Shown piece after piece: positions 14,687 through 47,350 of a stretch of 64,000 bases of DNA (its first letter is position 1; each line of letters begins with the position of its first letter). Location: sequence record NC_027399.1, one strand, 5' to 3'. The notes beneath the pieces were generated by a model that worked only from the letters and a program-made list of their open reading frames with translations, was not told the DNA's origin and did not search any database. The translations under genes were made by a program, and so were the position numbers.

Positions 14687-14717
14687 AAAAAGGGGAGCAT
14701 ATTAGCTCCCCTTTTTT
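14685..14717. terminator. Bidirectional terminator between gp46 and the convergent nuclease gene
   Basis: AAAAAAAGGGGAGC-atatta-GCTCCCCTTTTTT. Confidence 0.8.
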
Positions 14718-15733
14718 ATTATTGTCATAATTTCATTCAACGATGCAGGTGATACGGTTTCAGTCCACCCATCACCGAATAATTCTTTTGTTAAGTGTCT
14801 TGCTTTTATGGTTCTTTTTATTTCTTTTTCTATGTTAAATGCATCATTACAATTTTCATATACTTTGTGGTATACAACATTCAATTTGTACTTACATTTA
14901 TTTTTATATGAACCCATTCTGTGTTTGATATTCTTTGTTATACCGAATTTATAACCAACTATATTATTATAATCATCAGATACTTCTAAAATGTATATAC
15001 CTGAACTAAAATCAGAAGATTTATAACCATTTTTGTAACTAACAGAATTACACAAAGGACACCCTTTATCTCGCATAAAATTGTCATATGTCATAGACCA
15101 TGTATAATTGCATTTACAAGTTAAAATGACTTTACTAAAAACACCATTAAAGTTCTTTTCATCTATTAATTCAAATTTAATGCCAGTTTCTTTGCTTTTA
15201 ATTTTTAAATTCTCATTTAATTCATTTATACTGTATTTGTGAGTACCTGAACATTTCAAACAACCAATATTATTACTGAAAAATGAATCATAAGTGGTAG
15301 TATTCCATTCGTATGCTTCAGAATGTTTAGTATTGTCATTGCATTTTAGTTTTAAATATGTTTTTGTTTTATTATATTCATCAAACCCGAGGAATTCCAG
15401 TGTCCCACCTCGTTTAATGCATTCATTTTCCACATTTTGAATTAAAATTTCAGGTGTTAACTTATTCAATGAAGGCTTTCTGAACTTTTTTGATTCTATA
15501 TTTCTCAGATATCTATATAATTTGTTAATTCTGTAATTATTATAAGTTATATTATCATGTGTTATTGAAGTAAGTGTATTATTACCTAACCATTTTTCTT
15601 CAATAATGAATCCATTGAATTTTATATTAAATTTGGATAACCTTTTCGATAAATCGTTGAAATATTCCCATGGAGTTCTGGAATTATAGTTAACGTGAAC
15701 TAAAATAATATCATCTGGTAAAGATATTATCAT
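14702..15733 (-). CDS. Putative homing endonuclease: 2 Zn-repeats plus a GIY-YIG/T5orf172-type domain
   Basis: GIYILE...YKFGIT...HR...E...GDGWTET C-terminal domain; repeats ending GCLKC and GCPLC. Confidence 0.7.
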   Translation of the reverse strand: MIISLPDDIILVHVNYNSRTPWEYFNDLSKRLSKFNIKFNGFIIEEKWLGNNTLTSITHDNITYNNYRINKLYRYLRNIESKKFRKPSLNKLTPEILIQNVENECIKRGGTLEFLGFDEYNKTKTYLKLKCNDNTKHSEAYEWNTTTYDSFFSNNIGCLKCSGTHKYSINELNENLKIKSKETGIKFELIDEKNFNGVFSKVILTCKCNYTWSMTYDNFMRDKGCPLCNSVSYKNGYKSSDFSSGIYILEVSDDYNNIVGYKFGITKNIKHRMGSYKNKCKYKLNVVYHKVYENCNDAFNIEKEIKRTIKARHLTKELFGDGWTETVSPASLNEIMTIIKKGS

Positions 15734-16224
15734 TTTTGATCTCTTTTTATATCATTCATATTCAATTGACCACTTTGTATTAGCTTTCTGGCTTGTTTGG
15801 AACGTTCTTTGATGTTACTACCGGGTACTAACCCCAAATCACTAAGAATTTCGCTCTGTTGGTTTGCTGGAAGTCGTTTGAAGCGATTTACATCAACGGT
15901 AAGTGCCGTGTGATGTATAACTTGTTCATCTGGTGAAACAGAATCGTGGTATTCCAGATAATCTGCTAAATTTCTCAATACTTCGTATAACGGTTTATCC
16001 GTTAAATGCTTACAATATTGGTGGAAGCTATTATAAACTTTACCTTCGAACGCATTCACCTCATTTTGTAATACTCCCCTGCAACTCTGTGTATCATAAT
16101 GTCTGTGGTCAAGAACGGGTCTTATTATTTTAATTCCAATAATTGGATCAATACCATTTTGTTCCTTCAGTTTTCCATTTCTATATTTGGCAGCTTCATT
16201 GCTATTTTTTAATCTACGTTTCAT
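15730..16224 (-). CDS. gp49: Recombination endonuclease VII, gp49-like
   Basis: PVLDHRH...CRGVL..EVNAFEGKV...LRNLADYL His-Me motif. Confidence 0.8.
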   Translation of the reverse strand: MKRRLKNSNEAAKYRNGKLKEQNGIDPIIGIKIIRPVLDHRHYDTQSCRGVLQNEVNAFEGKVYNSFHQYCKHLTDKPLYEVLRNLADYLEYHDSVSPDEQVIHHTALTVDVNRFKRLPANQQSEILSDLGLVPGSNIKERSKQARKLIQSGQLNMNDIKRDQK

Positions 16225-16349
16225 GATATAATCTCTTATATTATATATCTAATAAATTTATTTACTTCAATAAATACCTATGTAAATAATCTTTCTGTAT
16301 AATGCATAATTCAATACATAATTTCTTGATACGTTAGATACGGAATAGC

Positions 16350-16385
16350 AAAATAGGTCAGTACTTTTCAGTACTGACCTATTTT
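16350..16385. terminator. Perfect 16-bp hairpin, likely terminator of the gp26/gp51 transcript
   Basis: AAAATAGGTCAGTACT-tttc-AGTACTGACCTATTTT. Confidence 0.75.
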
Positions 16386-16394
16386 TTTCTGATT

Positions 16395-16610
16395 TTATCG
16401 CCCCTCATTTTGTTTACGGACTTTCTTGTTGTATGCTTTAACCATCAAGTCTCGTTCAGTTACTGGCATATTAAGTAACATTTCATACGAGGTATTATCA
16501 ATATATACAGCAGCTTCCATTAATGCTTGTTTAATTTCTTGCTGATTAAACTCTATGTCTCGTATGTATTTTTCTATTTCAGTTGCCTCTAACTGGAGAA
16601 GCTGAGATCG
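16395..16610 (-). CDS. gp51-like baseplate/tail assembly ORF with no proper start, predicted -1 frameshift extension of gp26
   Basis: Hand translation: RSQLLQLEATEIEKYIRDIEFNQQEIKQALMEAAVYIDNTSYEMLLNMPVTERDLMVKAYNKKVRKQNEGR*. Not in the ORF track; an in-frame TGA lies 4 codons upstream of the slippery site. Confidence 0.7.
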   Translation of the reverse strand, partial: RSQLLQLEATEIEKYIRDIEFNQQEIKQALMEAAVYIDNTSYEMLLNMPVTERDLMVKAYNKKVRKQNEGR

Positions 16611-17449
16611 AAAAAACGGGTAATATCATACACCAAATCTTCAATAACCCATTCATGATTACATTCACTACATTCAACCTGCATCGTGTGTTCAACACCA
16701 GTATTTTGCATTGTGTTGATTTCATCCTGAATAGTTTTAAGAACGTCTTTTGACTGATCTCCTACCCATTCTGAAATAAATTCTCGTTCAGTCACTTCAT
16801 CCCCGTCTGGAGTGATAATTTTAGAGATACTATAAACAATACCGTCGAAGTTAATTTTAGTGATAGGTTCAAAAATATCAGAAATGAATAGTTTTGCTCG
16901 GTCTTCATCACTTAACGACTCATCTAAATCGAGATATTTGGATTTGGACTGAATATTGAACATTCGCTCATTTATATCACATTGTTCTTTCCATGTAAGT
17001 GGTTTAAGTTCAATACTTAATCCATTATTTAAAACTACAGTAGGGATTTCTTTAATATATTTTACTGTATTCAATAGCACATTCAAATCACGTTCGATAC
17101 GACCTTCATGGTCACATTCGGGACATTTTACATTAATATCATAAGTATATTCTTTGGTTGCAACTTTAATTGCAATAAGCAGTTGTTCGATATCATTGAT
17201 GTATAATTCATCTGCATTAAGGACGTTCGGGCAGCAATTTTCAATAACTCGTGATACCGCATCCCCGGACATAAGCATATCAGGAGTATTCAGTACTATT
17301 TCATCACGAGCACTGCGAGCACATACCCCAACTTTAATACCTTTATTTCCTAATACACCATCGGGATATTTAATTACATCATTTGAAATAAGTTTAGCAC
17401 TAAGTACTTCAATTTTTGTGTACTTGGCTAGTGGGTTCATCTTACTCAT
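16589..17449 (-). CDS. gp26: Baseplate hub assembly protein, gp26-like
   Basis: NPLAKY...TARDEI-like SARDEIVLNTPDMLMSG...DIEQLLIAIKVAT, CPEC and CSEC pairs, terminal FF; GGAG RBS before the ATG at 17449. Confidence 0.8.
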   Translation of the reverse strand: MSKMNPLAKYTKIEVLSAKLISNDVIKYPDGVLGNKGIKVGVCARSARDEIVLNTPDMLMSGDAVSRVIENCCPNVLNADELYINDIEQLLIAIKVATKEYTYDINVKCPECDHEGRIERDLNVLLNTVKYIKEIPTVVLNNGLSIELKPLTWKEQCDINERMFNIQSKSKYLDLDESLSDEDRAKLFISDIFEPITKINFDGIVYSISKIITPDGDEVTEREFISEWVGDQSKDVLKTIQDEINTMQNTGVEHTMQVECSECNHEWVIEDLVYDITRFFDLSFSS

Positions 17450-17491
17450 AAAGACTCCAATCAATGAACAAAATAAATAATCTATATGACA

Positions 17492-17503
17492 TATTTATAA
17501 ATG
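17492..17503. promoter_or_regulatory. Overlapping divergent late promoters
   Basis: TATAAATA (minus, 17499-17492) and TATAAATG (plus, 17496-17503) between gp26 and the tape measure gene. Confidence 0.6.
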
Positions 17504-17519
17504 TTTAAAAGGATAAAAA

Positions 17520-19682
17520 ATGGCTGGTACAAGTACGGATTATCTATTACAACAATTGTTAACCAGTAATGAAAAAGCTAATGATAATTTATCTGCGATG
17601 AGAGATTTATTATCAGAAAATTTGAAAAAAAACGGTTCAAATAATAACAATAATAATAATCCAGGAAACGGAAATAATAGAAGAAAGAAAGAAAAGATAT
17701 CATTAAATGATGCTTTAAAAAATATATCCAGAGATGTTAGTGGATTTAGTAGAACTCTCATTAACGGTAGTGCGGATGTTGGAACTGTTACGAATTCGCT
17801 TGGTACCGGAATGAGTAGTGTAATCGGTACATTAGGAAAGGCTGTTCCAGCTATTAGTGGTGTAACTACTGCATTCCAGTTACTAATTGAAGCAGGACTA
17901 TCTGTTTATAATTATCTAAATCAACAACTGGAAATGTATAATAAAATTAATTCCAGTGGTGTTAGTTTATCAAATGGTATGAACTCTATTCGTACTGGTA
18001 GTGCTAATGCGTTAATGAGTATGGACAAATTCGGTAATTCCGTAGTAAAACATGCTGGTGTTATTGCACAATTAAATGGTATATACGGTGATGGTGTTAA
18101 GGAATATGGTGATTTGCTTGGAACATTACAATTAGCACAGGATAAAATAGGTATATATGGTGTATCACAGGAACAAATGGCAGACTTAACCGCGAGGAAT
18201 ATTAAATTCCAGAAACAATTTGGTGGTGCAGAATTAATTAGACAAACTAACCAGGAAAAAAGCACACAAGAATTTATTAAAAATATGACAACTTTTAGTA
18301 AATCAATGGGTGAATCAGTTGATGCAATTTTAAAGAAAACTCAGGATTTTGATAATTCACTTGATGCTCGTGGTTTAGAAGCTGCATTGGAAAACTGGGC
18401 TGGATTAAGTAATAAAGCTGCTACATTAACTACTGATGCATTTATTCAAGCTGCTGCCGGTATGGGTGACGCAGGAAAATCTTTTTTTAAAATAATTTCA
18501 TCACAAGCTGTAACTGGTGCATTACCTACTGAATATATGACTGGTGTTATTGCAGAATTTGCCGAAGAAAACAAAAAAATGTTTATGGGTGGTATTACTG
18601 ATGCAAAGGAAATACGCTCAGCTAACATCAAATGGGTTAGAATGCATAAAGATCAGATTAAGCGTGACATGATGAACCAGATACAACTTGGAAACATCGA
18701 AGCTGCTAACTTCAACCGAAATCTTCTTGATCTGGAAGCGTCTGCAAATGATCCAAAAAATGGACCAAAACAACGTTTAGAGGAATTAACTAATAGATTT
18801 AATAATTGGATTAGTAATACATTTATAAAGCCATTTAATCTTTTAATGGATGCTGGGGTTACATGGTTATTAGATATTTCAGATCAAACAACATCATTTA
18901 ACCAATTTATATCTACTGTATTCAGTCAGGGAATCGACAAAATAATGAGTATGGTAACTAACTTTTTTAAGAACTTTCCAGTACTTAGTGATATAGGAAA
19001 AACTTTATTCGGTGATTCTTATAATACATTGGTTGATAATGTTGGTGGTTTTATTGGTAATTTAGTAAAAATACCTATACAACTGATATCAGTTGTAACC
19101 GATATATGGAATGGTAATTTAGCTGGTGCAAGGGAAACTGTACAAAATGCAATTGCTTCATTTAAACAGAATTTCTTGGGTATGTGGGAAGGTATAAAAG
19201 ATATCAAATTCAGTTTCAGTGACGTTAAAGACCGCTTGGTTAATATTGTAGAAACACTAAAAAATAAATTAATTAATGCATTTGACATTCTTAAATATGT
19301 TTTCGGTGTCAGTGATGAAATGCCAAAAACTGAAAATACAAAAACACCAAGTGCTGAAAAACCAAAAAATGAAAACATAAATACACCCAGTAACAGTAAA
19401 CCGACTGTTAATGATAATAACAGAAAACAACCACAAGTTGATCAAAATGCTTCTAATTATACCCCACCAACTCGTGTGGATGAAGCTCAAGATAATTACA
19501 AAAAATCTCCTGATGATGAAAAAGTTGATAATAATTTACAACCAGTAAATTACGATGAATCAATGGTTGAATTATTAGGACGTGTAACATCTGCGTTAGA
19601 AAAAGCTAACGAATACAATGTACAGAATTCAAATTATCTTAGAACTATATCTGATAATACTCAAATACAACGTAATAGTTAA
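17520..19682 (+). CDS. Putative tape measure / gp29-like tail protein
   Basis: 720 aa, helical Ala/Gly/Gln-rich, with F/W-spaced repeats in the C-terminal half; lies between gp26 and the portal. Confidence 0.6.
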   Translation: MAGTSTDYLLQQLLTSNEKANDNLSAMRDLLSENLKKNGSNNNNNNNPGNGNNRRKKEKISLNDALKNISRDVSGFSRTLINGSADVGTVTNSLGTGMSSVIGTLGKAVPAISGVTTAFQLLIEAGLSVYNYLNQQLEMYNKINSSGVSLSNGMNSIRTGSANALMSMDKFGNSVVKHAGVIAQLNGIYGDGVKEYGDLLGTLQLAQDKIGIYGVSQEQMADLTARNIKFQKQFGGAELIRQTNQEKSTQEFIKNMTTFSKSMGESVDAILKKTQDFDNSLDARGLEAALENWAGLSNKAATLTTDAFIQAAAGMGDAGKSFFKIISSQAVTGALPTEYMTGVIAEFAEENKKMFMGGITDAKEIRSANIKWVRMHKDQIKRDMMNQIQLGNIEAANFNRNLLDLEASANDPKNGPKQRLEELTNRFNNWISNTFIKPFNLLMDAGVTWLLDISDQTTSFNQFISTVFSQGIDKIMSMVTNFFKNFPVLSDIGKTLFGDSYNTLVDNVGGFIGNLVKIPIQLISVVTDIWNGNLAGARETVQNAIASFKQNFLGMWEGIKDIKFSFSDVKDRLVNIVETLKNKLINAFDILKYVFGVSDEMPKTENTKTPSAEKPKNENINTPSNSKPTVNDNNRKQPQVDQNASNYTPPTRVDEAQDNYKKSPDDEKVDNNLQPVNYDESMVELLGRVTSALEKANEYNVQNSNYLRTISDNTQIQRNS

Positions 19683-19694
19683 GGAAGTTAATAA

Positions 19695-21428
19695 ATGTCA
19701 TGGAAACGTCACATGAGTACTGCTCGACCACGAGTATCAGTACAAAAAAATACAAGTTCAGATAAAGCGGCAGGAAGCAAGTCAAATTTTGCTTCTTATC
19801 TTCCACAAGTATATCAAGGATTACCAAATCGAACTGATCGATATCGACAATATGAAGAAATGGATCAAGATCCTGAAATCAGAACTGCATTGAATATCAT
19901 TGCTGATTTCTGTACTCAGAGTGATGTTGATTTTGGATTACCTTACAAAATTAAGTACAAAGATAATATCGGTGATACTGAAGTTACTACAATCGAAGAC
20001 CGCCTGGATGCATGGACTGACCAGAATGATTTTAAAATCAGAATGTATGAAATTGTACGCGGTTTGTTGAAATATGGTGATCAATTTTTTATTCGTGATC
20101 CAGAAACTTATGATTGGTACTGGGTTGATCCTAGTAATGTTGAACAGGTATTTGTAAACCAGGCAACAGGTAAAAACCCTGTGGTTTATTATATCAGGGA
20201 TGTATCTTTGAATCTAAAAGATAAAGTACTTAGTAATGTACATATTGGATTTAACCAAAGTGCTTATACTGGTGCTGCACCTAATTTACTTGGTTCTAAT
20301 TCATCCGCTGCATCAGTTGGTGGATTGGCTGGGATTACAAGTTCTGGCTCTTCTGGTTCATCAGATCCATTTAATACAAGTGGTAGAATGGATGTATTAC
20401 CAGTTGCTGCTGAACACGTCATTCATTTTAGTCTAAACACAGGACAAGATGGTGTGTGGCCATTTGGTACCAGTATTCTGGAAAATGTTTTTAAAACATA
20501 TAAGCAAAAATCACTTCTTGAAGACAGCATTATTATATATCGAGTACAACGTGCACCTGAACGAAGGGTATTCCGTATTGATGTAGGTGATATGCAAACT
20601 CATCAGGCAATGGCTTATGTTGAACGTTTTAAAAATGAAATTCATCAACGAAGAATTCCTTCAAATAAAGGAGGAAGTACTTCAATGATGGATGCAGCAT
20701 ATAACCCATTAAGTATTTTAGAAGATTACTACTTCCCACAAACTGCTGATGGTCGTGGTTCATCCGTTGATACATTACCAGGTGGCGACAATCTTGGGCA
20801 GATTGATGATTTGAGATACTTTAATAATAAACTTATTAGGGGATTACAAATTCCTTCATCATATCTACCACAAGGTCCAGATGATGGAGGTGTTTCATTA
20901 TTTGGTGATGGTGCAACTCAGGCAATGGCAAGTGAAATTCGTTTTAATAATGAATGTATGCGTTATCAACGTCTGGTAGCAAAAGTATTCGATGCTGAAT
21001 TTAAACGATTTATGCTACATAACGGTTATAACATAAGTACTGCATCATTTGAGGTAGTATTGAATGCACCAATTAACCTTGCAACTTATCGTAGAGCAGA
21101 ACTGGATGCTAAATTGATTACTACCTACTTACCTCTTAATGATTTACCATATATGGCAAAACAAACCATTCTACAAAAAATGGGCTTTGAACAGAAAGAT
21201 ATTGTACAGAATGAAGAATTACTTCGTCAGGAACTTGGTATGGATATTAACACCGCTAATAGTACTGAACAAGCATCACTTCAATCAGTCGGTATTGAAG
21301 CACCAAATAATTCTGAACAAGATCTCGGTGTAGATGAAAATGGTGAGCTAGAAAGTGCAGATAAAGAATATCAGGATTCACAAGAAACATCAAATTTTAA
21401 CCCAAATGGTTTAGGTGATTCTTTTTAA
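19695..21428 (+). CDS. gp20: Portal protein, gp20-like
   Basis: RYRQYEEMDQDPEI..AL, LLEDSIIIYRVQRAPERRVFRIDVGDM, EDYYFPQ..GRGSSVDTLPGG.NLGQIDDLRYF. Confidence 0.95.
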   Translation: MSWKRHMSTARPRVSVQKNTSSDKAAGSKSNFASYLPQVYQGLPNRTDRYRQYEEMDQDPEIRTALNIIADFCTQSDVDFGLPYKIKYKDNIGDTEVTTIEDRLDAWTDQNDFKIRMYEIVRGLLKYGDQFFIRDPETYDWYWVDPSNVEQVFVNQATGKNPVVYYIRDVSLNLKDKVLSNVHIGFNQSAYTGAAPNLLGSNSSAASVGGLAGITSSGSSGSSDPFNTSGRMDVLPVAAEHVIHFSLNTGQDGVWPFGTSILENVFKTYKQKSLLEDSIIIYRVQRAPERRVFRIDVGDMQTHQAMAYVERFKNEIHQRRIPSNKGGSTSMMDAAYNPLSILEDYYFPQTADGRGSSVDTLPGGDNLGQIDDLRYFNNKLIRGLQIPSSYLPQGPDDGGVSLFGDGATQAMASEIRFNNECMRYQRLVAKVFDAEFKRFMLHNGYNISTASFEVVLNAPINLATYRRAELDAKLITTYLPLNDLPYMAKQTILQKMGFEQKDIVQNEELLRQELGMDINTANSTEQASLQSVGIEAPNNSEQDLGVDENGELESADKEYQDSQETSNFNPNGLGDSF

Positions 21429-21461
21429 AAATAAATAAAAGAGTACAAAAGGAATACTATC

Positions 21462-21692
21462 ATGCTTTTTAAAGATATTTTTGAGAGTACCAATGATTCA
21501 ATGTACGATCCAGAAGACGATAAAAGTGTATATAAAATTACAGATACTCGCAAACCAAAATTAACTTTGCAGGCTCTGAATAATCTACGCAAGTACAGAG
21601 AATTTAAAGCTAAAGAAGACCAAAACCGAGATGCAAATGTAGCTGCTCTGTATAAATCTTCTCATGCTGCACCGAATAACGGTGAAATGTAA
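21462..21692 (+). CDS. Small prohead-associated protein
   Basis: 76 aa after the portal; DTRKPKLTL..LN.LRK motif; N-terminal IFE candidate cleavage site. Confidence 0.55.
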   Translation: MLFKDIFESTNDSMYDPEDDKSVYKITDTRKPKLTLQALNNLRKYREFKAKEDQNRDANVAALYKSSHAAPNNGEM

Positions 21693-21697
21693 TATAT

Positions 21698-21738
21698 AAA
21701 AATGGCATTTTTTAAGCTCTTTTAATAATGCCATTTTT
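21698..21738. terminator. Intergenic hairpin (terminator or processing site)
   Basis: AAAAATGGCATT...AATGCCATTTTT, 12-bp stem with a 17-nt loop. Confidence 0.45.
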
Positions 21739-21788
21739 CATTAAACTAAATACTACATATTAATGATTAAAATCATTAGGAGAATATA

Positions 21789-22562
21789 ATGGCTAATCTA
21801 AAACTACTACAAGAAGCGATTCAGGCTTTTGCAAATGGCGAGCAAGAAGTCGCGGATACTAAAATGCGTCAATATTTCATTGAAGCTGCAAGTGATATTA
21901 ATAAAAAACTTGAAGAAGAAATGGAAGACGAAACTGACGATGAAGTAATGGAAGACTTCTCTATGTCTCCATCTCAAGATCTGAATACCGATGTACAATA
22001 CCCAATGGAAGAAGCTGAAGAAGAACCAACTGACGTTGAAGTTGATTTCCAAGCTGATGATGAAGGTGCAGATGATTCTGCTGAAGCAGAACTACCAAGT
22101 GCTGATCAATGGGCTGATATCCAGGATGCATATCGCGGTCTACAGAAAATGTTTGATGAAATCGCTGGTTCCGACGAAGTTGAACTAGGTGACGAAGAAG
22201 AACCTACTGAAGACGGTTTCGAAGATGTTTCTTTTGGTGACGAAAAAGTTGGTGAATCTTATAAAATGAAAGATGCTCCAAGTGTAGATAAAACTGAAAA
22301 ACCAGGAGTTAACAAAAAGTCTCCAATTGCTTCTACTGCTAAGTCTCCAGTACAAGGTGTTGAACCAATTAAAACTGGTAAAAACACCACTCCAGTAGTT
22401 GACGATACTTTTGACGGTGCTGATGCTGAATCTTTCACTATCCCACGTGATAATGACAATGTTCTTAATAAAGCAACTGATGCAATGAAAGATGCTAAGC
22501 AACCAAAAAATACCGCTACTAAAGCTAGTTCAGTACTACCTAAAAAAGCACCTAAACTATAA
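21789..22562 (+). CDS. Acidic prohead core protein (gp67/68-like position)
   Basis: Very Glu/Asp-rich; sits between portal and protease. Confidence 0.55.
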   Translation: MANLKLLQEAIQAFANGEQEVADTKMRQYFIEAASDINKKLEEEMEDETDDEVMEDFSMSPSQDLNTDVQYPMEEAEEEPTDVEVDFQADDEGADDSAEAELPSADQWADIQDAYRGLQKMFDEIAGSDEVELGDEEEPTEDGFEDVSFGDEKVGESYKMKDAPSVDKTEKPGVNKKSPIASTAKSPVQGVEPIKTGKNTTPVVDDTFDGADAESFTIPRDNDNVLNKATDAMKDAKQPKNTATKASSVLPKKAPKL

Positions 22563-22586
22563 TCATAAAAGGGAGATCATTTAAAT

Positions 22587-24459: not shown

Positions 24460-25615
24460 ATGTCTAATAAACTACTAACTGAATCTCAATGGGCCGCGAC
24501 CAAAGAACGTATTACCGAAGGTCTAAAAGGCAGTCGTAAACGTGTGATGGATATTACTATGGATAACTATCGTCGTGAGCGTGCATTATTTGAATCTGCT
24601 ACTGCTGGTGCTACCACTGCTGGTAACATTGCTTCTGTTAACAAAGTAATTCTACCAATCATGCGTCGTGTNTATTGGTGTACAACCAATGACTGGTCCA
24701 TACTGCCAGATTCATACTCTACGTGTTCAATATGCAACCAATGCTCCAGGTGTTGCTGCTGGTGAAGAAGCTCTATCTCCATACAAAATCGCCAAATCTT
24801 ATACTGGTGAACTGAATTCTGATAACACTAGCCCACAAGCCGCTCCTACTTCTCAACTAGAAGGTACTATGGGTCGTCAGGTAAATATCAACATTCTACG
24901 TGAAATCGTTGAAGCCAAATCCCGTCGTCTCTCTGCTCGTTGGACTGTTGAATCTATGCAAGATGCACAATCTCAACACGGTGTTGATATTGAAGCTGAA
25001 CTGGTTAACGCAATTGCTCAAGAAATTACTGTAGAAATCGACCAAGAACTACTTTCTCGTCTACGTGCACTACCTGGTGCTCCAGCAGTGACCTATGACC
25101 AAACCAAAGTAACTGGTGTTGCTACTTTTATTGCTGATGAACACGCTTCTCTGGCAATTCTAATCAACCGTCAGGCAAACGAAATTGCTCGTCGTACCAA
25201 ACGTGGTGCAGCTAACTGGGCTGTTGTTTCTCCAGAAGCACTATCTATTATTCAGTCTGCAACTACTTCTAGTTTTGCACGCAGTACTGAAGGTACTTTC
25301 GAAGCACCAACCAACGTTAAATTTGCTGGTACTCTAAATGGTACTATGCGTATCTACGTTGATACCTATGCTTCTGATCTGGAAGATATCCTGATTGGTT
25401 ATAAAGGTGCTAACGAAACTGACGCTGGTGCATTCTATTGCCCATACGTTCCACTGATGGCTACCGGTACTGTAATGGATCCAAATACCTCCGAGCTAGT
25501 GACTTCCTTCCTGACTCGTTACGGTTATCTGGAATTCGTGGATTCATCCTCTTCCTTTGCAAACTCAGCCGATTACTTCAGCAAAATTGCTGTTCGTAAC
25601 GTTACTTTCATGTAA
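24460..25615 (+). CDS. gp23: Major capsid protein, gp23-like, split by an N/gap at 24672
   Basis: ILPIMRRV | IGVQPMTGP..QIHTLR, KSRRLSARWTVESMQD, EITVEIDQE, DAGAFYCPYVPL, TRYG. The track ORFs 24460-24765 and 24668-25615 are two halves of one gene. Confidence 0.92.
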
Positions 25616-25658: not shown

Positions 25659-25688
25659 ATGGGACTTCACTTTGAAGTCCCATTTTTT
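25659..25688 (+). terminator. Intrinsic terminator after the major capsid gene
   Basis: ATGGGACTTC-acttt-GAAGTCCCAT followed by a T run. Confidence 0.85.
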
Positions 25689-25730
25689 ATAGCATTAATT
25701 TGTTGAACAAAGTAACAAGGATGTTTTATA

Positions 25731-26957
25731 ATGATGACATTTGATGAAGTGCATGAACAATTTATTAAAATTGGTAATAAGAGAGAACCATCTTATTTTA
25801 AAAAAATAATTTTAAAAGAAATTGAAATGTATAATTTAAATTATGAATTTATTGGGTTTAATATTAATTCTATTATTGAATTTAAAGGAGCAAGAACGAA
25901 GTTAGTACTAAAATGTCCAGTACATGGTATTTTTTCTGATTGTACTTTCAATAATTTTACAAAATCTAATGCACAGGGTCGCCGCTGTCCTGAATGTGCT
26001 AAAGAATCTAAAGCTTTGAAACAACGTTGTTGTACTGAAGAATTTATTGAAAAATGTAAAAGAGTACATAATGATTTTTATGATTACAGTAAGACTATAT
26101 ACGGAAAAAATGCTCATGAACACGTTGTTGTTACCTGTAAATTACCAAATCATGGAGATTTCAAAATACGTCCTTCATGTCATTATAATAAAGCACAAGG
26201 TTGTCCTATATGTGCAAAAGAAAAAAGAAAAATTGATGAACAGGATATAATAACCAGATTAAATGAAATACATAATAATCACTTTGGATTTGATAAATTC
26301 GTATATAATGGATCGGAAAATAAATCTATAGTAACTTGTTTAGTGCATAATAAAAATTATGAAGTTAAAGTTGGGAGTTTACTTTATGATCATGGCTGTG
26401 CATTGTGTTCAACAAGAGCAAAACACACAAAAGAATCATTCATATCGATGGCAGTACTGAAACATGGTAATGTATATGATTACAGTAAAGTACAATATGT
26501 AGATTTATTCACTAAAGTTGAAGTTGTTTGTAATAAAGATAATCATGGTTCATTCTTTATTACTCCAACAAGTCATATACATGGTTTAAAACCAAATGCA
26601 TGTCCAAAATGTTCAAAATATGGATTTCAACCAAATAAACCTGGATTCTTTTATATTCAAAAAATAACTAATTCATGTAAAGAAGTTATATCTTATAAGT
26701 ACGGTATTACATGTGATTTAATAAGACGATTGAATGAGCATAACAGAAATTCTATATATGTGCATGAATATATTTTTCATGAATACTTTGATAATGGGTA
26801 TGAAGCAATTGAACTTGAAAAGCTTATAAAAAAATCAATTCCTTCTTGGTATTTGAATTCTAATGAATTTGGTGATGGTTTCACTGAAACATACGATCCT
26901 AAATACCACAAAGATGTTATTAATATAATCAAAAAACAACAAAGGAGAAATCCATGA
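25731..26957 (+). CDS. Putative homing endonuclease: 4 Zn-repeats (DUF723-like) plus a GIY-YIG/T5orf172-type domain
   Basis: Repeats C..HG.F.......GCP.C; C-terminal GFFYIQ...YKYGIT...RL...E...GDGFTET. Confidence 0.75.
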   Translation: MMTFDEVHEQFIKIGNKREPSYFKKIILKEIEMYNLNYEFIGFNINSIIEFKGARTKLVLKCPVHGIFSDCTFNNFTKSNAQGRRCPECAKESKALKQRCCTEEFIEKCKRVHNDFYDYSKTIYGKNAHEHVVVTCKLPNHGDFKIRPSCHYNKAQGCPICAKEKRKIDEQDIITRLNEIHNNHFGFDKFVYNGSENKSIVTCLVHNKNYEVKVGSLLYDHGCALCSTRAKHTKESFISMAVLKHGNVYDYSKVQYVDLFTKVEVVCNKDNHGSFFITPTSHIHGLKPNACPKCSKYGFQPNKPGFFYIQKITNSCKEVISYKYGITCDLIRRLNEHNRNSIYVHEYIFHEYFDNGYEAIELEKLIKKSIPSWYLNSNEFGDGFTETYDPKYHKDVINIIKKQQRRNP

Positions 26958-27366: not shown

Positions 27367-28101
27367 ATGGGTACTTATATACTAAAACATACGTTGTTTG
27401 ATAATCAGATAAACAAAGGATATACTTATCTTCCATCTTGTATCATTGAACTTTATAAAGAAACAGAAAATAATTCATTTCTGAGTATTCGTTATCAGGG
27501 AAAATATGATAATAAGGTAAAAATAAAAAATGAACTGATTATTGATGATTTAATTAAACAAAACATCATTACACAAGATATTCTATCTGAACTGTTTATT
27601 GACAGATTTTTATTGAATGCATCCAAAACATTATCATCCTCAGTCAAGTCTATACTGAACACCGATAACAGAACTATTTGTATTAACCCGTTTCTGGTGA
27701 AAGAGTTTTTGAAATACAAAAAACAATATAACATTGATATTAATAATACGATACTTAATAATGCAATGCTTGAAAATGTTAAGTATGAATTCATGGAAGT
27801 GGTAACGTATAACAATTCACATGTAGGTAAAACTGCAAAACAAATTAGCAAAACTTCTGAAGAAAAACGATTCACATCTTTACTTGATGATAATTTTATT
27901 GATTACGATGGAATAGAAAAATATCTACCTTTGGTGTTTGATGTATTCAAATTTTCATTATCTGATAATGAATTCACCTCAAACGGTAGATTGAAACATA
28001 ATGGATATTATTATTCTAATAAAGCCAGAGTTATCAAATTCAGGATTAATGATGATTCATCCATTGAATATGTCAAATTATCAAATGAAGAAATTAAATA
28101 G
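27367..28101 (+). CDS. Hypothetical protein
   Basis: 244 aa with promoter and AAGGA RBS. Confidence 0.65.
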   Translation: MGTYILKHTLFDNQINKGYTYLPSCIIELYKETENNSFLSIRYQGKYDNKVKIKNELIIDDLIKQNIITQDILSELFIDRFLLNASKTLSSSVKSILNTDNRTICINPFLVKEFLKYKKQYNIDINNTILNNAMLENVKYEFMEVVTYNNSHVGKTAKQISKTSEEKRFTSLLDDNFIDYDGIEKYLPLVFDVFKFSLSDNEFTSNGRLKHNGYYYSNKARVIKFRINDDSSIEYVKLSNEEIK

Positions 28102-28153: not shown

Positions 28154-29941
28154 ATGAGTATTAGTTTTAATCACCCCCAGAATACTATAACTAGTACTGG
28201 AAATTCTGGATCATTAAATCTAGTGGTTCTTGGTGGTTCTCCTACAAACCCAAGACCAATACGTTTTAATTCTTCATCCGTTATTATGCCTGTGCAATCA
28301 CTACCCACAGGTGAAGCTGGTGCTATTGTTTTTGACAAAAGCACAAAAACCATGAAATATCATGATGGCTCTAACTGGGTTGAATTATTAAGTGCTTCCG
28401 ATGTTGTAGCACCCCTTAATGTTCAAATCAATAACATTATCAATTCAATGGGAACAAAAATTGATACTGTTAATTATTCAAGTGCTGCAATACCGATGGC
28501 TAGTATTAGTGGTACTAATTTGAATATAGTATTTCCCAATTCCAATCCAACTGTTGGTAGTACCGGATTGTATACCAGTGCAAAAACTGGTAGTATTATG
28601 TACTATAGTTTAGCGTCAGGCCAAACATATGCCAGTATTCGTGAACAAATGTCAGGAAAAACCAATGGTCAAAGTGGTAGAACCGGTTCTCAAACTTCTC
28701 CGTGGTTAACTTCAGATGGATGGTGTTTGGCTGATGGTATGTGGTGGACGTGGCAAGGAGAGAATGGTACAGTACTAAAACAAACACCAAACCTGAATCA
28801 AAGTGCATATTTTAAGGGTTTATCTTCTGGTGGAATTACAAAAACTGATTCACCAATTGGGCAAAGTGGTTCTCTTGATACCTATACATTCACAATCCCA
28901 GATCATTATCACGGTGTAGGACAAATGAATGGAAATTCTGGACCTACTGGTGACGATGGTTCATTTATATTTGGAAGATCTTGGAATGATGGAAATTCAT
29001 ATAGAGGACTTACTATTACTGGAGATCTCAACCGACGTGAAGAACGTTCGATTAATGGGAGTGATCCAAATATTGCATTGAGTACAACGAATTCTATTTA
29101 TTTAAATGCATCTCAACGTACAATTTCACACTCACATAACTTACAGAACTTCGACGTAGCACACTTCAATGTTGCAGTACTGTATAATATTGCTGAACCA
29201 AGCTTGGCATTATCGGAAAGTGTGGCAAATACAAAATTCGTACTAAAATCCGGTGATACTATGACTGGCAACTTGAATGTAGCCAACACTCTTAGAATCG
29301 CAGGTAATAGTACTAACATTCAGTTATATTTTACCAACTCTACTTTATCTGAAAGAGCAGCAATTTATCACCAAAGTACAACAAATACATTAAGACTGCG
29401 TTCAAATGGTGGTTCTGAAGTATATATTAATGGTGATGGTTCTCTGTATGTTCCAGGTTCCACAACCGTTACTGGTAATTTTGTATCACAAGGTTCCGCA
29501 ACTGTTTCTGGTAACATTATATCACAGGGTTCTGCAACAGTTTCTGGTAACATTACATCACAAGGTTCTGCAACTGTCTCTGGTAACATTACATCACAAG
29601 GTAGAAATGTAGTAAGAGCTATTAATGGGATAACTGCTGATGGTAATGGAAACTTAAATGTAACGAATTCTAGTGGTACTACTTCCGGCTGGCATAAAGA
29701 TGAAGGTACCGGTATTATCACACAATGGGGTTACATCCAAAGTACTGGTAATGATATCCATGTAAACTTTCCACGAACTTTCAGTTCAGCATGTTACTGT
29801 GTAACATTGGGTCAAATTTTCAACTCTCATGCTGACCAAGGACGAACTGCACGTTTATTAGCACCTGCGTCAGTTTCTGGATTTGATTTTTATATCGGTT
29901 CATCAGAAACTGGGTGTTACTGGCAAGCAATCGGTCGATAA
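28154..29941 (+). CDS. Tail fibre / baseplate fibre protein
   Basis: G/S/T-rich; GAIVFDK...KYHDGSNW; tail-collar-like GWCLADG; FVLKSGDTMTGNL; C-terminal SGWHKD..TGIITQWG...VNFP..F...CYWQAIG lectin-like domain. Confidence 0.8.
   Translation: MSISFNHPQNTITSTGNSGSLNLVVLGGSPTNPRPIRFNSSSVIMPVQSLPTGEAGAIVFDKSTKTMKYHDGSNWVELLSASDVVAPLNVQINNIINSMGTKIDTVNYSSAAIPMASISGTNLNIVFPNSNPTVGSTGLYTSAKTGSIMYYSLASGQTYASIREQMSGKTNGQSGRTGSQTSPWLTSDGWCLADGMWWTWQGENGTVLKQTPNLNQSAYFKGLSSGGITKTDSPIGQSGSLDTYTFTIPDHYHGVGQMNGNSGPTGDDGSFIFGRSWNDGNSYRGLTITGDLNRREERSINGSDPNIALSTTNSIYLNASQRTISHSHNLQNFDVAHFNVAVLYNIAEPSLALSESVANTKFVLKSGDTMTGNLNVANTLRIAGNSTNIQLYFTNSTLSERAAIYHQSTTNTLRLRSNGGSEVYINGDGSLYVPGSTTVTGNFVSQGSATVSGNIISQGSATVSGNITSQGSATVSGNITSQGRNVVRAINGITADGNGNLNVTNSSGTTSGWHKDEGTGIITQWGYIQSTGNDIHVNFPRTFSSACYCVTLGQIFNSHADQGRTARLLAPASVSGFDFYIGSSETGCYWQAIGR
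29453..29602 (+). repeat. In-frame 36-nt (12-aa) tandem repeat, about 4.2 copies
   Basis: PGSTTVTGNFVS, QGSATVSGNIIS, QGSATVSGNITS, QGSATVSGNITS, QG. Confidence 0.95.
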
Positions 29942-37474: not shown

Positions 37475-38946
<1,472 letters not shown>

Positions 38947-38981
38947 TTCAGGAGAAATGATAAGGATATCATTTTATTTTT

Positions 38982-42318
<3,337 letters not shown>

Positions 42319-42343
42319 ATATCTAAATAAAATACTAAAATAA

Positions 42344-43636
<1,293 letters not shown>

Positions 43637-43643
43637 ATAAAAA

Positions 43644-43753
43644 CTGAACGAAAATCACCAATTTGATATAATGAATATTGTAAGGAGATGTACCTACAAA
43701 TATAAAAAAGCAGTTAAATAATTTTGAACAAAAACACAAAAATGTTCTATAAT
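43644..43753 (+). promoter_or_regulatory. Two tandem early/middle promoters for gp32
   Basis: CTGAAC-N17-TATAAT (43644-43672) and TTGAAC-N18-TATAAT (43724-43753). Confidence 0.65.
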
Positions 43754-43846
43754 TATTTGGTAGGAAGGAAGAATGAATTTTCTTCTGATATTAGTGACAA
43801 AGAAAATATAAACAAAGATGCAATTAAACATAAAGGACTATAATCT

Positions 43847-44932
43847 ATGAAAACTCTAGCAGAAATTCGTGCAGAACTAAAAGCTCAAGCTGAAAAACAA
43901 GAAGCTCAAAAGAATGGTACATTTGTTGGTGAACGTAAACCAGATTCTTTCTTGGCTTTTTGGAATGTTGGTTTAAATGAAACTCTAAACCTTCGTTTTC
44001 TACCTGATGCAGATGAATCAAATCCATATTTCTGGCGTGAACGTGATATGATTAATCTTACCTTTAATGGTATTAAAGGTGTTAAACAAGAACGTGTAAC
44101 TGTTCAAGTGCCATGTAATGAAATGTGGGTACCAAAAAGCTGCCCAGTATTGACTGAAGTTCGCAAATGGTTTGATGAAGCAAATAAAACCGAAAACGAG
44201 GAACTGAAAAAACTAGCATCCTCTTACTGGAAAAAGAAAACCTATCTGATGCAATGTTTTATTGCTCCAGACAGTGCACCAGTTAAAGATGATATTGCTC
44301 CAGAAAACCCAATTCGTCGAATTCTAGCTAATAAAGATATCTTCGAAAAAGTAAAATCCATTCTACTTAATCCTGGTATCAAAGAAATGCCAACTCACTT
44401 CGAATATGGTCGTGATTTTGGTATTACTAAAACTAAAAATGGTGGTGGGTATAACAATTATGATAGTTCACAATTTTCTATGTCTGAACGTCCACTGAGT
44501 GCAGAAGAACGTGCAGCAATTGAAAAATATGGTCTGTATAATCTAAATGATTTTATGCCAAAACAACCAAATGCAGAAGAACTAAAAGCAATCAAAGAAA
44601 TGTTCGAAGCATCAGTGAATGGTGAAGCTTATGATCCAGATCGTTGGGCTTTTGCTTACCGTCCAGCAGGTGTTCAAAAACCACAAACTACATCTCCTGC
44701 TGATGTGATTGCTAGTGCAAATATTCAAACTCCATCTGTAAGTACTGAACCAACAACCCCTGTTGTAGAGAGTACCAGTACTGCTGCATCAGACCTGCTA
44801 AATCGCCTGAAAACTAACAGTACTGCACCAGTACAGGAACCAGTAGTTGCATCAGCACCAGTTCCTGAAACTACCAAAAGTACTGCTTCAGCAGCAGATC
44901 TAATTGCCCGTCTGAAACAACAACAAAAATAA
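43847..44932 (+). CDS. gp32: Single-stranded DNA-binding protein, gp32-like
   Basis: LRFLPD...VPC.EMW...CPV...YWKKKTYL..., GRDF.ITK....GYNNYDSSQF, low-complexity tail. Confidence 0.85.
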   Translation: MKTLAEIRAELKAQAEKQEAQKNGTFVGERKPDSFLAFWNVGLNETLNLRFLPDADESNPYFWRERDMINLTFNGIKGVKQERVTVQVPCNEMWVPKSCPVLTEVRKWFDEANKTENEELKKLASSYWKKKTYLMQCFIAPDSAPVKDDIAPENPIRRILANKDIFEKVKSILLNPGIKEMPTHFEYGRDFGITKTKNGGGYNNYDSSQFSMSERPLSAEERAAIEKYGLYNLNDFMPKQPNAEELKAIKEMFEASVNGEAYDPDRWAFAYRPAGVQKPQTTSPADVIASANIQTPSVSTEPTTPVVESTSTAASDLLNRLKTNSTAPVQEPVVASAPVPETTKSTASAADLIARLKQQQK

Positions 44933-44963
44933 TAAGTTTTTGGTAAAATATAGAGTATATAAT

Positions 44964-44989
44964 AAAGGAGCTATGGATTAGCTCCTTTT
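44964..44989 (+). terminator. Intrinsic terminator
   Basis: AAAGGAGCTA-tggat-TAGCTCCTTTT. Confidence 0.8.
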
Positions 44990-45005
44990 CATTTCAAATG
45001 GAGAA

Positions 45006-46124
45006 TTGAATATGAAACTGACAAGTGGTTTTGCTAATATTTTAAAAAATAGTACTGCATCAGTTAAAAAGAATACTGGTGTTAGCGTTGGATTCCATGA
45101 TCCTGATACATGGATCAGTACTGGTAATTATGCACTTAATTATCGTATTAGTGGTTACTTTGATCGTGGTATTCCACTAGGAAAAGTTGTAATGTTTGCA
45201 GGTGAATCTGGTGCAGGTAAATCATTCCTAGCTTCTGGTAATATAGCTCGTGAAGCACAAAAACAAGGTATTTTTGTAGTACTAATCGATTCAGAGAACG
45301 CTCTTGATTCTGATTGGTTAGAATCTTTAGGAGTAGATACTTCAGAAGATAAACTTCTAAAAGTTAACATGGGCATGGTAAACGACGTAGCCAAATTCAC
45401 ATATGAATTTATTGATGGATATCGTAAAGAATATCAAGATATCCCTCGTGAAGAACGCCAGAAAGTATTATTCATTGTGGATAGTATTGGTTTTCTATCT
45501 GTTCCTGCTGCTGTTGAACAATTCAAATCAGGGGATATGAAGGGGGACATGGGGATAAAGGCGAAGCAGCTAAAAGCTTATATTACTCAATGTGTGAACT
45601 CTTTTGGTGATCTGAATATTGGTATGGTTTGTGTGAATCATTCATATTCCTCACAAGACATGTTTAACCCAGATCCTGTTGTAGCCGGTGGTGCCGGACT
45701 TGTATATGCTTCTTCTATGGTAATTGCAATGGCTAAGTTGAAGTTAAAAGAAGATGAAGATGGAAATAAAACTTCAGAAGTTAATGGAATTCGTGCTAAA
45801 TGTAAAGTTATGAAGACTCGCTATAATAAACCTTTTGAGGATGTAGAAATTAAGATTCCGTGGAATACTGGCATGGATCCAAGAAGTGGTTTACTTGATA
45901 TGTTTGAGAAGTATAATTTGATTACAAAAACTGGCAATAGACTTCAATACACTGATATAGATACTGGTGAAGTAATTATTAAATTTCGTAAAGCATGGTC
46001 TAATAATGAAGACAACTGTTTAGATTTAGTAATGAATCAGTTTAAACGCAATCCATTAGTCGCACCAATCACTGAAGAAGAAAAAGGCGATGAGAACTTT
46101 GGTGTTGAACCAGATGTAGAATAA
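45006..46124 (+). CDS. uvsX: RecA-like recombinase UvsX
   Basis: WISTGNYALN, GESGAGKS, IDSENAL, IVDSIG, KTRYNKPF. Confidence 0.95.
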   Translation: MNMKLTSGFANILKNSTASVKKNTGVSVGFHDPDTWISTGNYALNYRISGYFDRGIPLGKVVMFAGESGAGKSFLASGNIAREAQKQGIFVVLIDSENALDSDWLESLGVDTSEDKLLKVNMGMVNDVAKFTYEFIDGYRKEYQDIPREERQKVLFIVDSIGFLSVPAAVEQFKSGDMKGDMGIKAKQLKAYITQCVNSFGDLNIGMVCVNHSYSSQDMFNPDPVVAGGAGLVYASSMVIAMAKLKLKEDEDGNKTSEVNGIRAKCKVMKTRYNKPFEDVEIKIPWNTGMDPRSGLLDMFEKYNLITKTGNRLQYTDIDTGEVIIKFRKAWSNNEDNCLDLVMNQFKRNPLVAPITEEEKGDENFGVEPDVE

Positions 46125-46201
46125 ATGTTTAAAATTATGGTTGATTTAGGTCAACCATTTTGTTATACTTTCAGTATAACATTTTAATTGAGAATTTACA
46201 G

Positions 46202-47350
46202 ATGGCTAAAAAAAGAACTCAAGAAGAAGCAAATAAATTAGTTTTTGATGCCTGTGAACGCAAAAACTACACATTTAAATCTTTTGTATATAATAACAGA
46301 AATACTAGAATTGATGTACATTGTAATGTATGTGGGTATGAATGGGATATATTGTTTGAAAATTTAACAAGAAATCCTTGTGGTTGTCCAGATTGTGCTG
46401 GATTGGTTAAACGAACACAAGAACAAGCAGAAAATGAAGTACGTCAAAAATGTAATGAAAGAAATTATAAATTTGGAAAGTTTGTTTATGTAAATAATCA
46501 AACAAAAATACCGTTAATTTGCCATTGTGGATACGAATGGGTTTCATGTTCTTTTTCTAAATTTGTACATGGTAACAGGGGTTGTCCACGTTGCTCTAAA
46601 AAAATACAATTAACTCAAGAAGAAGCAACCAAAAAAGTGGATGCAAAATGTAAAGAGAATAATTACTTATATAAGGAATTCTCGTATATTGGAGTTGATG
46701 ATACGAGACTTTTTCTTATTTGTCATTGTGGATATGATTGGAATTGTTCATTTGATAAATTTGTTAATTCAGGAACAGGCTGTCCTAAATGTGGTGGTAG
46801 ATTGCAATTAACTCAAGAAGAAGCCGAAGAACGAGTATTATCTAAATGCAAAGAGCATAATTATACATATAAACCATTTTGTTATCTAACCAATGAAACA
46901 AAAATATCTTTGATTTGTCATTGTGGATATGAATGGGATTGTAGGTATTCATTGTTTGTAATGCCAAACGGAACTGGTTGTCCAAAATGTTCTCATAATG
47001 ATGGACAGTTATATTCATATATACATTCAATAACAGATGATGACGGTAATTTAATTTCTGTAAAATATGGGATAGAAACCACAATCAATAGTAGGAATAA
47101 AAGTCAAAATAAATTATCTAACTATAATATTTCAGTACTTAATACTTACAAATATATTACTGTTGAACAGTGTAAAAATGCAGAAAAAGAATGTATTAAA
47201 TTATTCCAAAAAGAAAACAAAGAACTTTTTGGAAGAAAGGGTTATATAACTAAAGAAGAAATGAGGGATGGTTGGACGGAAACCACATCTGTTTCTAATA
47301 TTGAAAAAATCATTTCTATCTATGAAAAATGGGGTGGAATTAAACAATAA
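46202..47350 (+). CDS. Putative homing endonuclease: 4 tandem Zn-repeats of about 66 aa plus a GIY-YIG/T5orf172-type domain
   Basis: Repeat TQEEA...C...NY.F..F.Y....T.I.LICHCGYEW...F..F....GCP.C; C-terminal LYSYIH...VKYGI...E...RDGWTET; start placed at the ATG at 46202. Confidence 0.75.
   Translation: MAKKRTQEEANKLVFDACERKNYTFKSFVYNNRNTRIDVHCNVCGYEWDILFENLTRNPCGCPDCAGLVKRTQEQAENEVRQKCNERNYKFGKFVYVNNQTKIPLICHCGYEWVSCSFSKFVHGNRGCPRCSKKIQLTQEEATKKVDAKCKENNYLYKEFSYIGVDDTRLFLICHCGYDWNCSFDKFVNSGTGCPKCGGRLQLTQEEAEERVLSKCKEHNYTYKPFCYLTNETKISLICHCGYEWDCRYSLFVMPNGTGCPKCSHNDGQLYSYIHSITDDDGNLISVKYGIETTINSRNKSQNKLSNYNISVLNTYKYITVEQCKNAEKECIKLFQKENKELFGRKGYITKEEMRDGWTETTSVSNIEKIISIYEKWGGIKQ

Follow-up and report, generated by a model that had tools for sequence, protein, structure and literature searches.

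Probable Homing Endonuclease Genes With CapR-Like Zinc Repeats Next to Core Genes of the Klebsiella Jumbo Phage K64-1

Introduction

The majority of T5orf172 homing endonucleases (87%) carry a CapR, DUF723 or related zinc domain, and many of them carry several, in an arrangement described as "beads on a string," whose modularity has been argued to permit fast changes of target recognition (Barth, Dunham & Seed, 2023; PMC10448857). According to the same study, recombination between repeats has been shown for these enzymes, their genes adjoin essential genes and the boundaries of exchanged DNA, and DNA cleavage, dependent on the conserved Glu, has been shown for just one protein (PMC10448857). 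Its main text mentions neither K64-1 nor RaK2 nor jumbo phages. Here, we describe three probable homing endonuclease genes (HEGs) of this class in a stretch of 64,000 nucleotides (nt) (hereafter, the window), whose position 1 corresponds to genome position 62001 of Klebsiella phage K64-1 (NC_027399.1 / AB897757.1; genus Alcyoneusvirus; 346.6 kb) and which is 100% identical to the K64-1 record. The genes are gp114 (hereafter A), named "hypothetical protein" in RefSeq, and gp126 (B) and gp148 (C), both named "endonuclease."

The proteins encoded by these genes have the same order of domains, that is, N-terminal zinc modules and a C-terminal T5orf172 domain, and involve the same Pfam families as the T5orf172 HEGs of phage ICP1 (gp174, gp165). 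As in the set of Barth, Dunham & Seed (2023), the genes lie beside capsid, replication and recombination genes and at exchange boundaries, and show variable copy number, frameshifted alleles and inter-repeat recombination; unlike in that set, the host is a ~346-kb Klebsiella jumbo phage, the first knuckles of B are of the Cys/His type, and the nuclease domain of C is unrecognized by Pfam. CapR itself, a protein of the Vibrio cholerae PLE satellite, was related by Netter et al. (2021) to the N-terminal domains of the ICP1 T5orf172 homing endonucleases; it binds DNA in gel-shift experiments, the binding being lost in a Cys-to-Ser mutant, with four cysteines needed, and represses the ICP1 capsid operon, acting on the capsid promoter (PMC8096241). 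The zinc module of CapR is homologous to the window repeats (62.7 bits in C), and CapR is the sole member for which both DNA binding and its cysteine dependence have been shown; however, it is a repressor with one zinc motif and no nuclease domain, whereas the window proteins combine two to four modules with a nuclease domain. Similar arrays, consisting of three to five ~60-amino acid (aa) CapR/DUF4379/DUF723-like modules and a ~100-aa C-terminal nuclease of the EDxHD/Vsr type, have been reported for phage group II introns, and the modules there are read as modular DNA-binding units (NAR 2025; PMC12350094). The nuclease domain of those proteins is a different one, and they are intron-encoded, whereas the window genes are free-standing.

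In phage T4, SegF, SegG and other endonucleases cut the neighboring gene of an HEG-less relative, and flanking markers are co-converted. The original prediction for this stretch, made from the sequence alone, likened A, B and C to the T4 Seg enzymes and to zinc-finger nucleases. The former comparison stands as far as the presumed way of working is concerned: Seg proteins and I-TevI share the GIY-YIG superfamily fold with the window proteins, and their genes are free-standing between conserved genes. It fails for family membership and domain order, as the nuclease of Seg proteins and I-TevI is N-terminal and their DNA-binding parts are different (I-TevI has a small zinc finger in the linker), whereas the window proteins show the reverse order. 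Membership in the T4 Seg family is ruled out by this C-terminal position of the nuclease domain and by the lack of matches to Pfam GIY-YIG (PF01541) in A, B, or C. The latter comparison similarly captures the overall logic, since engineered zinc-finger nucleases (C2H2 fingers plus FokI) also join tandem zinc modules to a cleavage domain of little or no specificity. However, the finger of the engineered enzymes is a 28-aa C2H2 unit and FokI dimerizes, whereas the window module is CapR-like, about 65 aa long, with no per-module DNA code known, and the GIY-YIG nuclease is expected to be monomeric. A C2H2 zinc-finger array is ruled out by the 65–74 aa helix-plus-three-strand repeats and the lack of zf-C2H2 Pfam matches. 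Both the architecture and the idea of retargeting by repeats, implied to be novel in the original prediction, had already been published (PMC10448857), and hence are treated here as known ideas, not new ones.

Results and Discussion

Gene Organization

We consider it likely that A, B and C are free-standing HEGs of the T5orf172/CapR class, within the GIY-YIG superfamily. The observations behind this assignment are the domain make-up of the proteins, their paralogy, the sites of insertion, relatives in which such sites are empty, and allele cassettes sharing one breakpoint.

All three predicted open reading frames (ORFs) are present, the first one on the minus strand. HEG A (343 aa; 14702..15733, minus strand) encodes a Cys-less N-terminal part, two zinc repeats and a T5orf172 domain; HEG B (408 aa; 25731..26957, plus strand), four zinc repeats (C..H plus CxxC) and a T5orf172-type domain; and HEG C (382 aa; 46202..47350, plus strand), four zinc repeats with four Cys each and a T5orf172-related domain. 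Each gene indeed lies directly downstream of a core gene. The start of A overlaps by 4 nt (ATGA) the stop of the endo VII gene (15730..16224, minus strand), which is the probable target or insertion gene of A; B starts 115 nt past the major capsid gene; and C starts 77 nt past uvsX, its stop overlapping the uvsY start (TAATG). The suggested paralogy is borne out by reciprocal tblastn matches among A, B and C (E 1e-13 to 3e-19, ~25% identity), which extend over the repeats and the C-terminal domain, and all three proteins match PHROG 681 "endonuclease," with E from 3e-55 (A) to 9e-84. No further paralogue was found inside the window by tblastn with A, B, and C.

Insertion Sites and Allele Cassettes

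The insertion of A can be placed by comparison with Asteriusvirus, the sister genus. In the E. coli phage 121Q from this genus, the sbcC-like gene and endo VII are transcribed towards each other, with a hairpin alone between them and no HEG, while in TH47, from the same genus, an orthologue of A (340 aa) occupies the identical site. The 121Q endo VII ends with ...DIKKGS-stop, codons that make up the right arm of the hairpin. In K64-1, the corresponding bidirectional terminator-like hairpin (14688..14718) lies between the sbcC-like gene and HEG A, and its right arm encodes the end of A, KKGS-stop. It is the HEG that ends with those codons and the hairpin both in K64-1 (...IIKKGS-stop) and in TH47 (...IIKKGA-stop), and endo VII has a new tail, ...DIKRDQK-stop and ...DVKRDTK-stop, respectively, with the stop overlapping the HEG start. 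Since the end codons of endo VII together with the hairpin now terminate HEG A, the insertion occurred inside the last codons of endo VII. The HEG is fixed in every sequenced Alcyoneusvirus, with 97–100% identity around the locus.

Two further observations concern endo VII. A patch of ~300 nt (15900–16200) within this gene is only 60–87% identical between K64-1 and W12-3/phiKp_21, HEG A and the flanks being 97–100% identical; this allele patch is possibly a trace of past conversion. In ECO103 4-12-1, another Asteriusvirus, a different zinc-repeat nuclease gene, missing in 121Q, lies upstream of endo VII; its 318-aa product has DUF723/DUF4379 repeats and a DUF2726-like end, and the 5' half of endo VII next to it is 67–81% identical to that of 121Q, compared to 99–100% elsewhere.

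At locus C, uvsX of 121Q overlaps uvsY (TAATG) with no gene between them, and in K64-1 the 1.2-kb insert between uvsX and uvsY recreates the TAATG overlap at its end. The insert is part of a diverged uvsX + HEG cassette (45125..47311, plus strand), which is 56–83% identical to other Alcyoneusvirus genomes, with the flanks at 95–100%. The left edge of the cassette, 113 nt into uvsX, falls on the same nucleotide, 45125, in every allele compared, so that uvsX is 99–100% identical upstream of this position and 70–83% identical from it on; the right edge varies within 47206–47311, inside the 3' end of the HEG.

In genomes that are otherwise ~99% identical, uvsX occurs in at least four alleles and the HEG in at least five. 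The HEG alleles are those of K64-1/RaK2 (four repeats, 382 aa), KP13-7 (four repeats, 377 aa, one first-knuckle cysteine lost), W12-3 (four repeats, 390 aa), Muenster (three repeats, 308 aa), and OU509535 (four repeats, frameshifted in the fourth). The uvsX genes of Muenster and KP13-7 are 97–100% identical in every 100-nt bin but their HEGs differ, with a 186-nt indel that equals one repeat (three vs. four), and thus the HEG is exchangeable on its own. K64-1 and KP13-7, in turn, have 98% aa identity in the C-terminal half of the nuclease domain and differ in the rest, which points to recombination inside HEG C. In the W12-3 HEG, a ~45-nt stretch is identical in all four repeats, and the third and fourth have 85% identity over a length of 181 nt; judging by their sequence, such repeats would be a ready substrate for unequal crossing-over. 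The synonymous divergence (dS) of the HEG C repeats (~1.2–1.3) equals that of the linked uvsX (~1.3), and hence most of the K64-1 differences represent replacement of the whole cassette, not stepwise change of repeats. The K64-1-type uvsX shows 75–78% DNA identity to other Alcyoneusvirus alleles and 74% to Asteriusvirus uvsX.

Position 45125, the common breakpoint, is a candidate for a hot spot at which the uvsX-linked enzymes cut or recombination takes place. A direct repeat at this position, TAATTAT..TAATTAT, was considered as a binding motif and rejected: it encodes N-Y..N-Y and is missing from other alleles.

Taken together, clean empty sites in relatives were found at loci A and C (both in 121Q), and diverged tracts in linked flanking genes, in uvsX, in endo VII, and in endo VII of ECO103 4-12-1. 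The free-standing, HEG-like behavior beside core genes that had been anticipated is thus seen in the empty sites, the allele cassettes, and the diverged patches in neighboring genes.

Locus B is different in that the post-capsid site in Asteriusvirus is always occupied, though by differing genes, and so provides no clean empty site. The occupant is an orthologue of B in Turkey5, a DUF4379 protein gene in Turkey3, and a gene for a DUF7487 plus restriction-endonuclease-like protein in ph0011; from this comparison, the site appears to act as a landing place for nuclease genes. B itself is 99.5–100% identical across all Alcyoneusvirus genomes.

The surroundings of this locus show additional features. 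Two genes past the capsid-linked nuclease gene, Asteriusvirus phages encode a stand-alone 102-aa T5orf172 protein without a DNA-binding part; at that position, K64-1 has an unrelated 244-aa ORF (27367–28101) with no Pfam match. The major capsid gene (24460–25615) is represented in the K64-1 record by two overlapping ORFs, with an N at 24672, where 26 nt are missing in comparison with Muenster and W12-3, in which the gene is intact; the split probably stems from faulty assembly of this record rather than from biology.

Nuclease Domain

The C-termini of A, B, and C carry the motif Y-I ... K-[YF]-G-I ... R ... E ... D-G-[WF]-T-E-T, and by analogy with the family, the conserved Tyr of strand 1, [YF]-G of strand 2, Arg, and Glu may be assigned catalytic roles. 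The domain of A (14705..15037, minus strand), of the T5orf172/GIY-YIG type, is defined by Pfam and motif alignment, matching MUG113 (PF13455) with 35.4 bits (cut-off 22.3) and T5orf172 (PF10544) with 31.6 bits (cut-off 20). That of B (26619..26954, plus strand) is delimited by weak Pfam matches, motif alignment, and the boundaries of the repeats. For C (46994..47347, plus strand), the link to T5orf172 comes from profile–profile comparison, and that to GIY-YIG, from the fold. The profile of the C-type domain matches a profile of A, B, and the stand-alone T5orf172 proteins with 97.8% probability (E 1e-12), and this alignment pairs the Arg, the Glu, and the T-E of DGWTE. When residues 267–382 of the C model were compared with known structures by a search independent of Foldseek, the best matches were At-HIGLE (Z 6.2) and Slx1 (Z 5.7 and 5.1), followed by I-TevI (3.5), PD-T4-3 (3.4), and UvrC (3.3). 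Although the Z values are modest, the best matches are GIY-YIG nucleases, and this part of the protein is thus predicted by the model to have the GIY-YIG alpha/beta fold. Hence the shared C-terminal domain of the GIY-YIG/T5orf172 type, one of the claims of the original prediction, is supported by the motif in all three proteins, by Pfam in A, and by profile alignment and fold in C.

Zinc Repeat Arrays

The two repeats of A (aa 91–163 and 164–230; 15044..15463, minus strand) have ligands C..H/CxxC and CxC/CxxC, respectively. The four repeats of B (25782–26003, 26004–26219, 26220–26414, and 26415–26618, plus strand) and the four 66-aa repeats of C (46202..46993, plus strand) were delineated using cysteine motifs and alignment. 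This mapping agrees with a hidden Markov model (HMM) built from the repeats, a check that had been proposed together with the original prediction: both yield two, four, and four repeats, the counts initially claimed. The repeats comprise 65–74 aa (66 aa in C, 65–74 aa in B, 67–73 aa in A), against the about 60–67 aa given originally, and the second knuckle is GCPxC in seven out of 10 repeats, the remaining three being of the RCPEC, GCALC, and GCLKC/ACPKC type. All 10 repeats have four predicted zinc ligands, that is, CxC, CxxC, or C..H, and then CxxC some 20–25 residues further on. First knuckles of the CxC and CxxC kinds occur in C; B and one repeat of A have Cys..His at this place. The N-terminal 90 aa of A are Cys-less and align weakly to the repeat.

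The amino acid identity among repeats is 38–57% within C and 20–35% within B. At the DNA level, the repeats of the window genes are 55–65% identical and are not detected by Tandem Repeats Finder. According to Pfam, the C repeats match CapR with 62.7 bits (E 4e-17; cut-off 24.2) in four stretches, and DUF4379 with 37.3 bits (cut-off 24.5); the B repeats match DUF723 with 25.5 bits (cut-off 20.9), CapR being just below the threshold (23.6 vs. 24.2); and the A repeats match DUF4379 with 24.9 bits (cut-off 24.5). The Pfam description of DUF4379 is "probable treble clef zinc finger."

Structure prediction, also proposed earlier, indicated that the repeats fold separately, but yielded no significant match of a single repeat to a solved structure. 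The AlphaFold model of C has a mean predicted local distance difference test score (pLDDT) of 89.7 and a predicted template modeling score (pTM) of 0.39, which corresponds to confident domains without fixed mutual arrangement, as for beads on a string. In this model, each repeat forms a 15-residue helix, then three short strands, then a short helix, and a single repeat modeled alone has a pLDDT of 88.3. Sequence and profile searches with the repeats against solved structures yielded rubredoxin-like and DPH3-like knuckles with E of 0.2 or higher (profile) and 0.013 (whole protein). The whole C model compared with PDB by Foldseek yielded tandem double-stranded RNA-binding domains (E 4e-3 or worse, template modeling score 0.1–0.2), which we reject as homology because they mirror the repeated helix–strand units. 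In structure comparison, the repeat part of C (model residues 1–267) also weakly resembles Trypanosoma brucei mitoribosome proteins (6yxx_E2, Z 5.1; 6sga_Fd, 3.8; 6hiv_DS, 3.1), and the annotators of Muenster list an HHpred match of the B orthologue to 6HIY_DS; a related zinc module may exist in kinetoplastid mitoribosomal proteins.

By tblastn, C matches 506 phage records, including T5, T4-like, Vibrio, Staphylococcus, and Aeromonas phages, the identity to the proteins of T5 and T4-like phages being ~27%. Within Alcyoneusvirus, the C query has four matching places in K64-1, the fourth of which is outside the window, six in RaK2, and 10 in KP13-7. Among the best 120 metagenomic and genomic homologues, 18 have a T5orf172-like C-terminus and two to five repeats, and 102 have other C-termini and three to eight repeats; some aligned homologues end in a Vsr/DUF559-like domain instead. 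Such partners other than T5orf172 are comparable to the nuclease of the group II intron proteins. Given this variety of C-termini, the array can be regarded as a promiscuous DNA-binding module serving several nuclease domains.

The modular organization raises the possibility of an additive code, in which each repeat reads its own short sub-site, and the specificity is predictable and changed by adding, deleting or reordering repeats. Such a proposal has been made before (PMC10448857), and it agrees with the natural occurrence of three and four repeats at the uvsX locus, the homogenization of repeats at the DNA level in the W12-3 allele, the independent folding of each repeat in the model, and the joining of the same array, with two to eight repeats, to other nuclease domains in database homologues. 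On the other hand, most of the differences at the uvsX locus are swaps of whole cassettes with dS of ~1.2–1.3, like that of the linked uvsX, and the role of some repeats may be in spacing, regulation, or non-specific binding. We therefore regard the additive code as unlikely, although the three- and four-repeat alleles and the homogenized repeats show that raw material for gain, loss, and shuffling of repeats exists. Somewhat less likely still is the joint reading that the CapR-like modules form a readable additive code and that the 45125 breakpoint marks the cleavage site. If it were true, the sites cut by the three- and four-repeat alleles of the uvsX locus would differ predictably, and the family would offer a natural scaffold for monomeric programmable nucleases; with 45125 as the cleavage site, rival HEG alleles would drive the replacement of each other's uvsX within one genus.

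Expression and Selection

Terminator-like hairpins followed by a T run precede both plus-strand HEGs, one between the capsid gene and B (25659..25693, plus strand), and the other between uvsX and C (46137..46168, plus strand), the hairpins being placed at 25659–25683 and 46137–46158; a terminator is also annotated at both places in Muenster, and shuffled sequences of the capsid/B and uvsX/C regions contain 0.0–0.1 terminator-like sites. Given these hairpins, expression of B and C is probably weak and due to read-through, as is common for free-standing HEGs. The public "RNA" runs with the locus are libraries of total nucleic acid from wastewater, available in the form of contigs, and are uninformative on transcription. 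The 63-nt "hypothetical protein" gp147 of RefSeq (46126–46188) coincides with the uvsX/C hairpin and is probably not a gene.

The ratio of non-synonymous to synonymous divergence (dN/dS) between genera is 0.27 for A and 0.33 for B, and the ratio for the repeats of the C alleles is 0.2–0.4, compared to 0.10 for uvsX, all these values being rough due to the saturated dS. Values of 0.2–0.4 argue against decaying pseudogenes and thus bear on the possibility that the genes are inactive relics, drifting without function as harmless passengers behind terminators. The decay of HEGs after fixation is known (PMC10448857), and two C alleles fit it, that of OU509535, frameshifted in repeat 4, and that of KP13-7, one repeat of which has lost a first-knuckle cysteine. 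However, in addition to the dN/dS values, which refer to saturated synonymous divergence between genera, the frames of 343–408 aa are intact in K64-1 and nearly all relatives, and all zinc ligands and the nuclease motif are retained in A, B, and C. Hence we consider the relic explanation highly improbable.

Proposed Mode of Action

For active HEGs, we infer the following mode of action. The ~65-aa zinc modules, folded independently, would bind an extended asymmetric DNA site, and the GIY-YIG-type nuclease domain would cut near it; the cut is expected to be close to the bound site because the linker has just ~5–10 residues. The genes would be expressed at the 3' end of the endo VII, capsid, and uvsX transcription units, A being translationally coupled to endo VII, and B and C being expressed weakly by read-through of the terminator-like hairpins. 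In a mixed infection, the enzyme would cut the sensitive allele in or next to the neighboring core gene of a related phage, and repair of the cut by recombination with the HEG-carrying genome would then copy over both the HEG and the linked core-gene allele.

Several facts weigh against the assignment of the three genes to active HEGs of this class. According to Barth, Dunham & Seed (2023), homing lacks experimental demonstration for any T5orf172 HEG (PMC10448857). The C-terminus of B matches MUG113 and T5orf172 below the cut-offs (15.5 and 13.4 bits, respectively), and that of C has no Pfam match to T5orf172 or MUG113 at E<1, and thus B and C are placed in the T5orf172 family by their homology to A and not by a Pfam threshold. 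The Z of 5–6 for the fold of C is in the range that the tool itself calls possibly unspecific, and a single repeat compared with PDB by Foldseek has no match below E 0.4. A distance of ~1.1 kb separates the 45125 breakpoint from the HEG, a long way for a target site; the breakpoint may have another cause. Finally, A and B are fixed and 99–100% identical in every sequenced Alcyoneusvirus, and hence there is no current presence/absence polymorphism for them in the genus.

This near-invariance of A and B across the genus could also be explained by domestication, that is, the genes no longer home but encode derivatives acting either as a DNA-binding regulator, like CapR, or as a nuclease directed against competing phages or satellites, like ICP1 Odn. 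The dN/dS below 1 and the position of B beside the capsid gene, given that CapR acts on a capsid promoter, are in line with this explanation, and homing and domestication are indistinguishable by sequence alone (PMC10448857). However, a successful sweep would also be expected to leave the genes fixed in one closely related genus; the residues of the nuclease domain, which would be superfluous for a pure repressor, are conserved in A, B, and C; and locus C shows continuing allele turnover, a frameshifted allele, and linked uvsX replacement, as in selfish elements. Considering all this, domestication seems rather improbable, and homing endonucleases remain our preferred interpretation of all three genes.

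Other Features of the Window

The large terminase gene (38982–42318) is annotated as two coding sequences. An 889-aa ORF (39649–42318) has a LAGLIDADG_3/Hom_end homing-endonuclease domain at aa 282–356, ahead of Terminase_6N; about 1 kb of this region is missing in E. coli phage G17 and present in UE-S1 and ph0011, and RaK2 is 94.5% identical to K64-1 here. The gene looks like it carries an intein-type or other HEG insertion. In the gene annotated as encoding a tail fiber protein, there are 4.1 tandem copies of a 36-nt unit, with 88% matches (29455–29602).

Conclusion

With the genes described here, the T5orf172/CapR class of homing endonucleases now includes a lineage of jumbo phages. The five HEG alleles with three or four repeats, combined with at least four linked uvsX alleles and one breakpoint, constitute a natural test set, which could allow for the first measurement of homing, target choice, and piecewise DNA reading in this class. 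For the phages themselves, it means that essential genes (uvsX, endo VII) of Klebsiella phages that are candidates for therapy are exchanged as cassettes with selfish nucleases.

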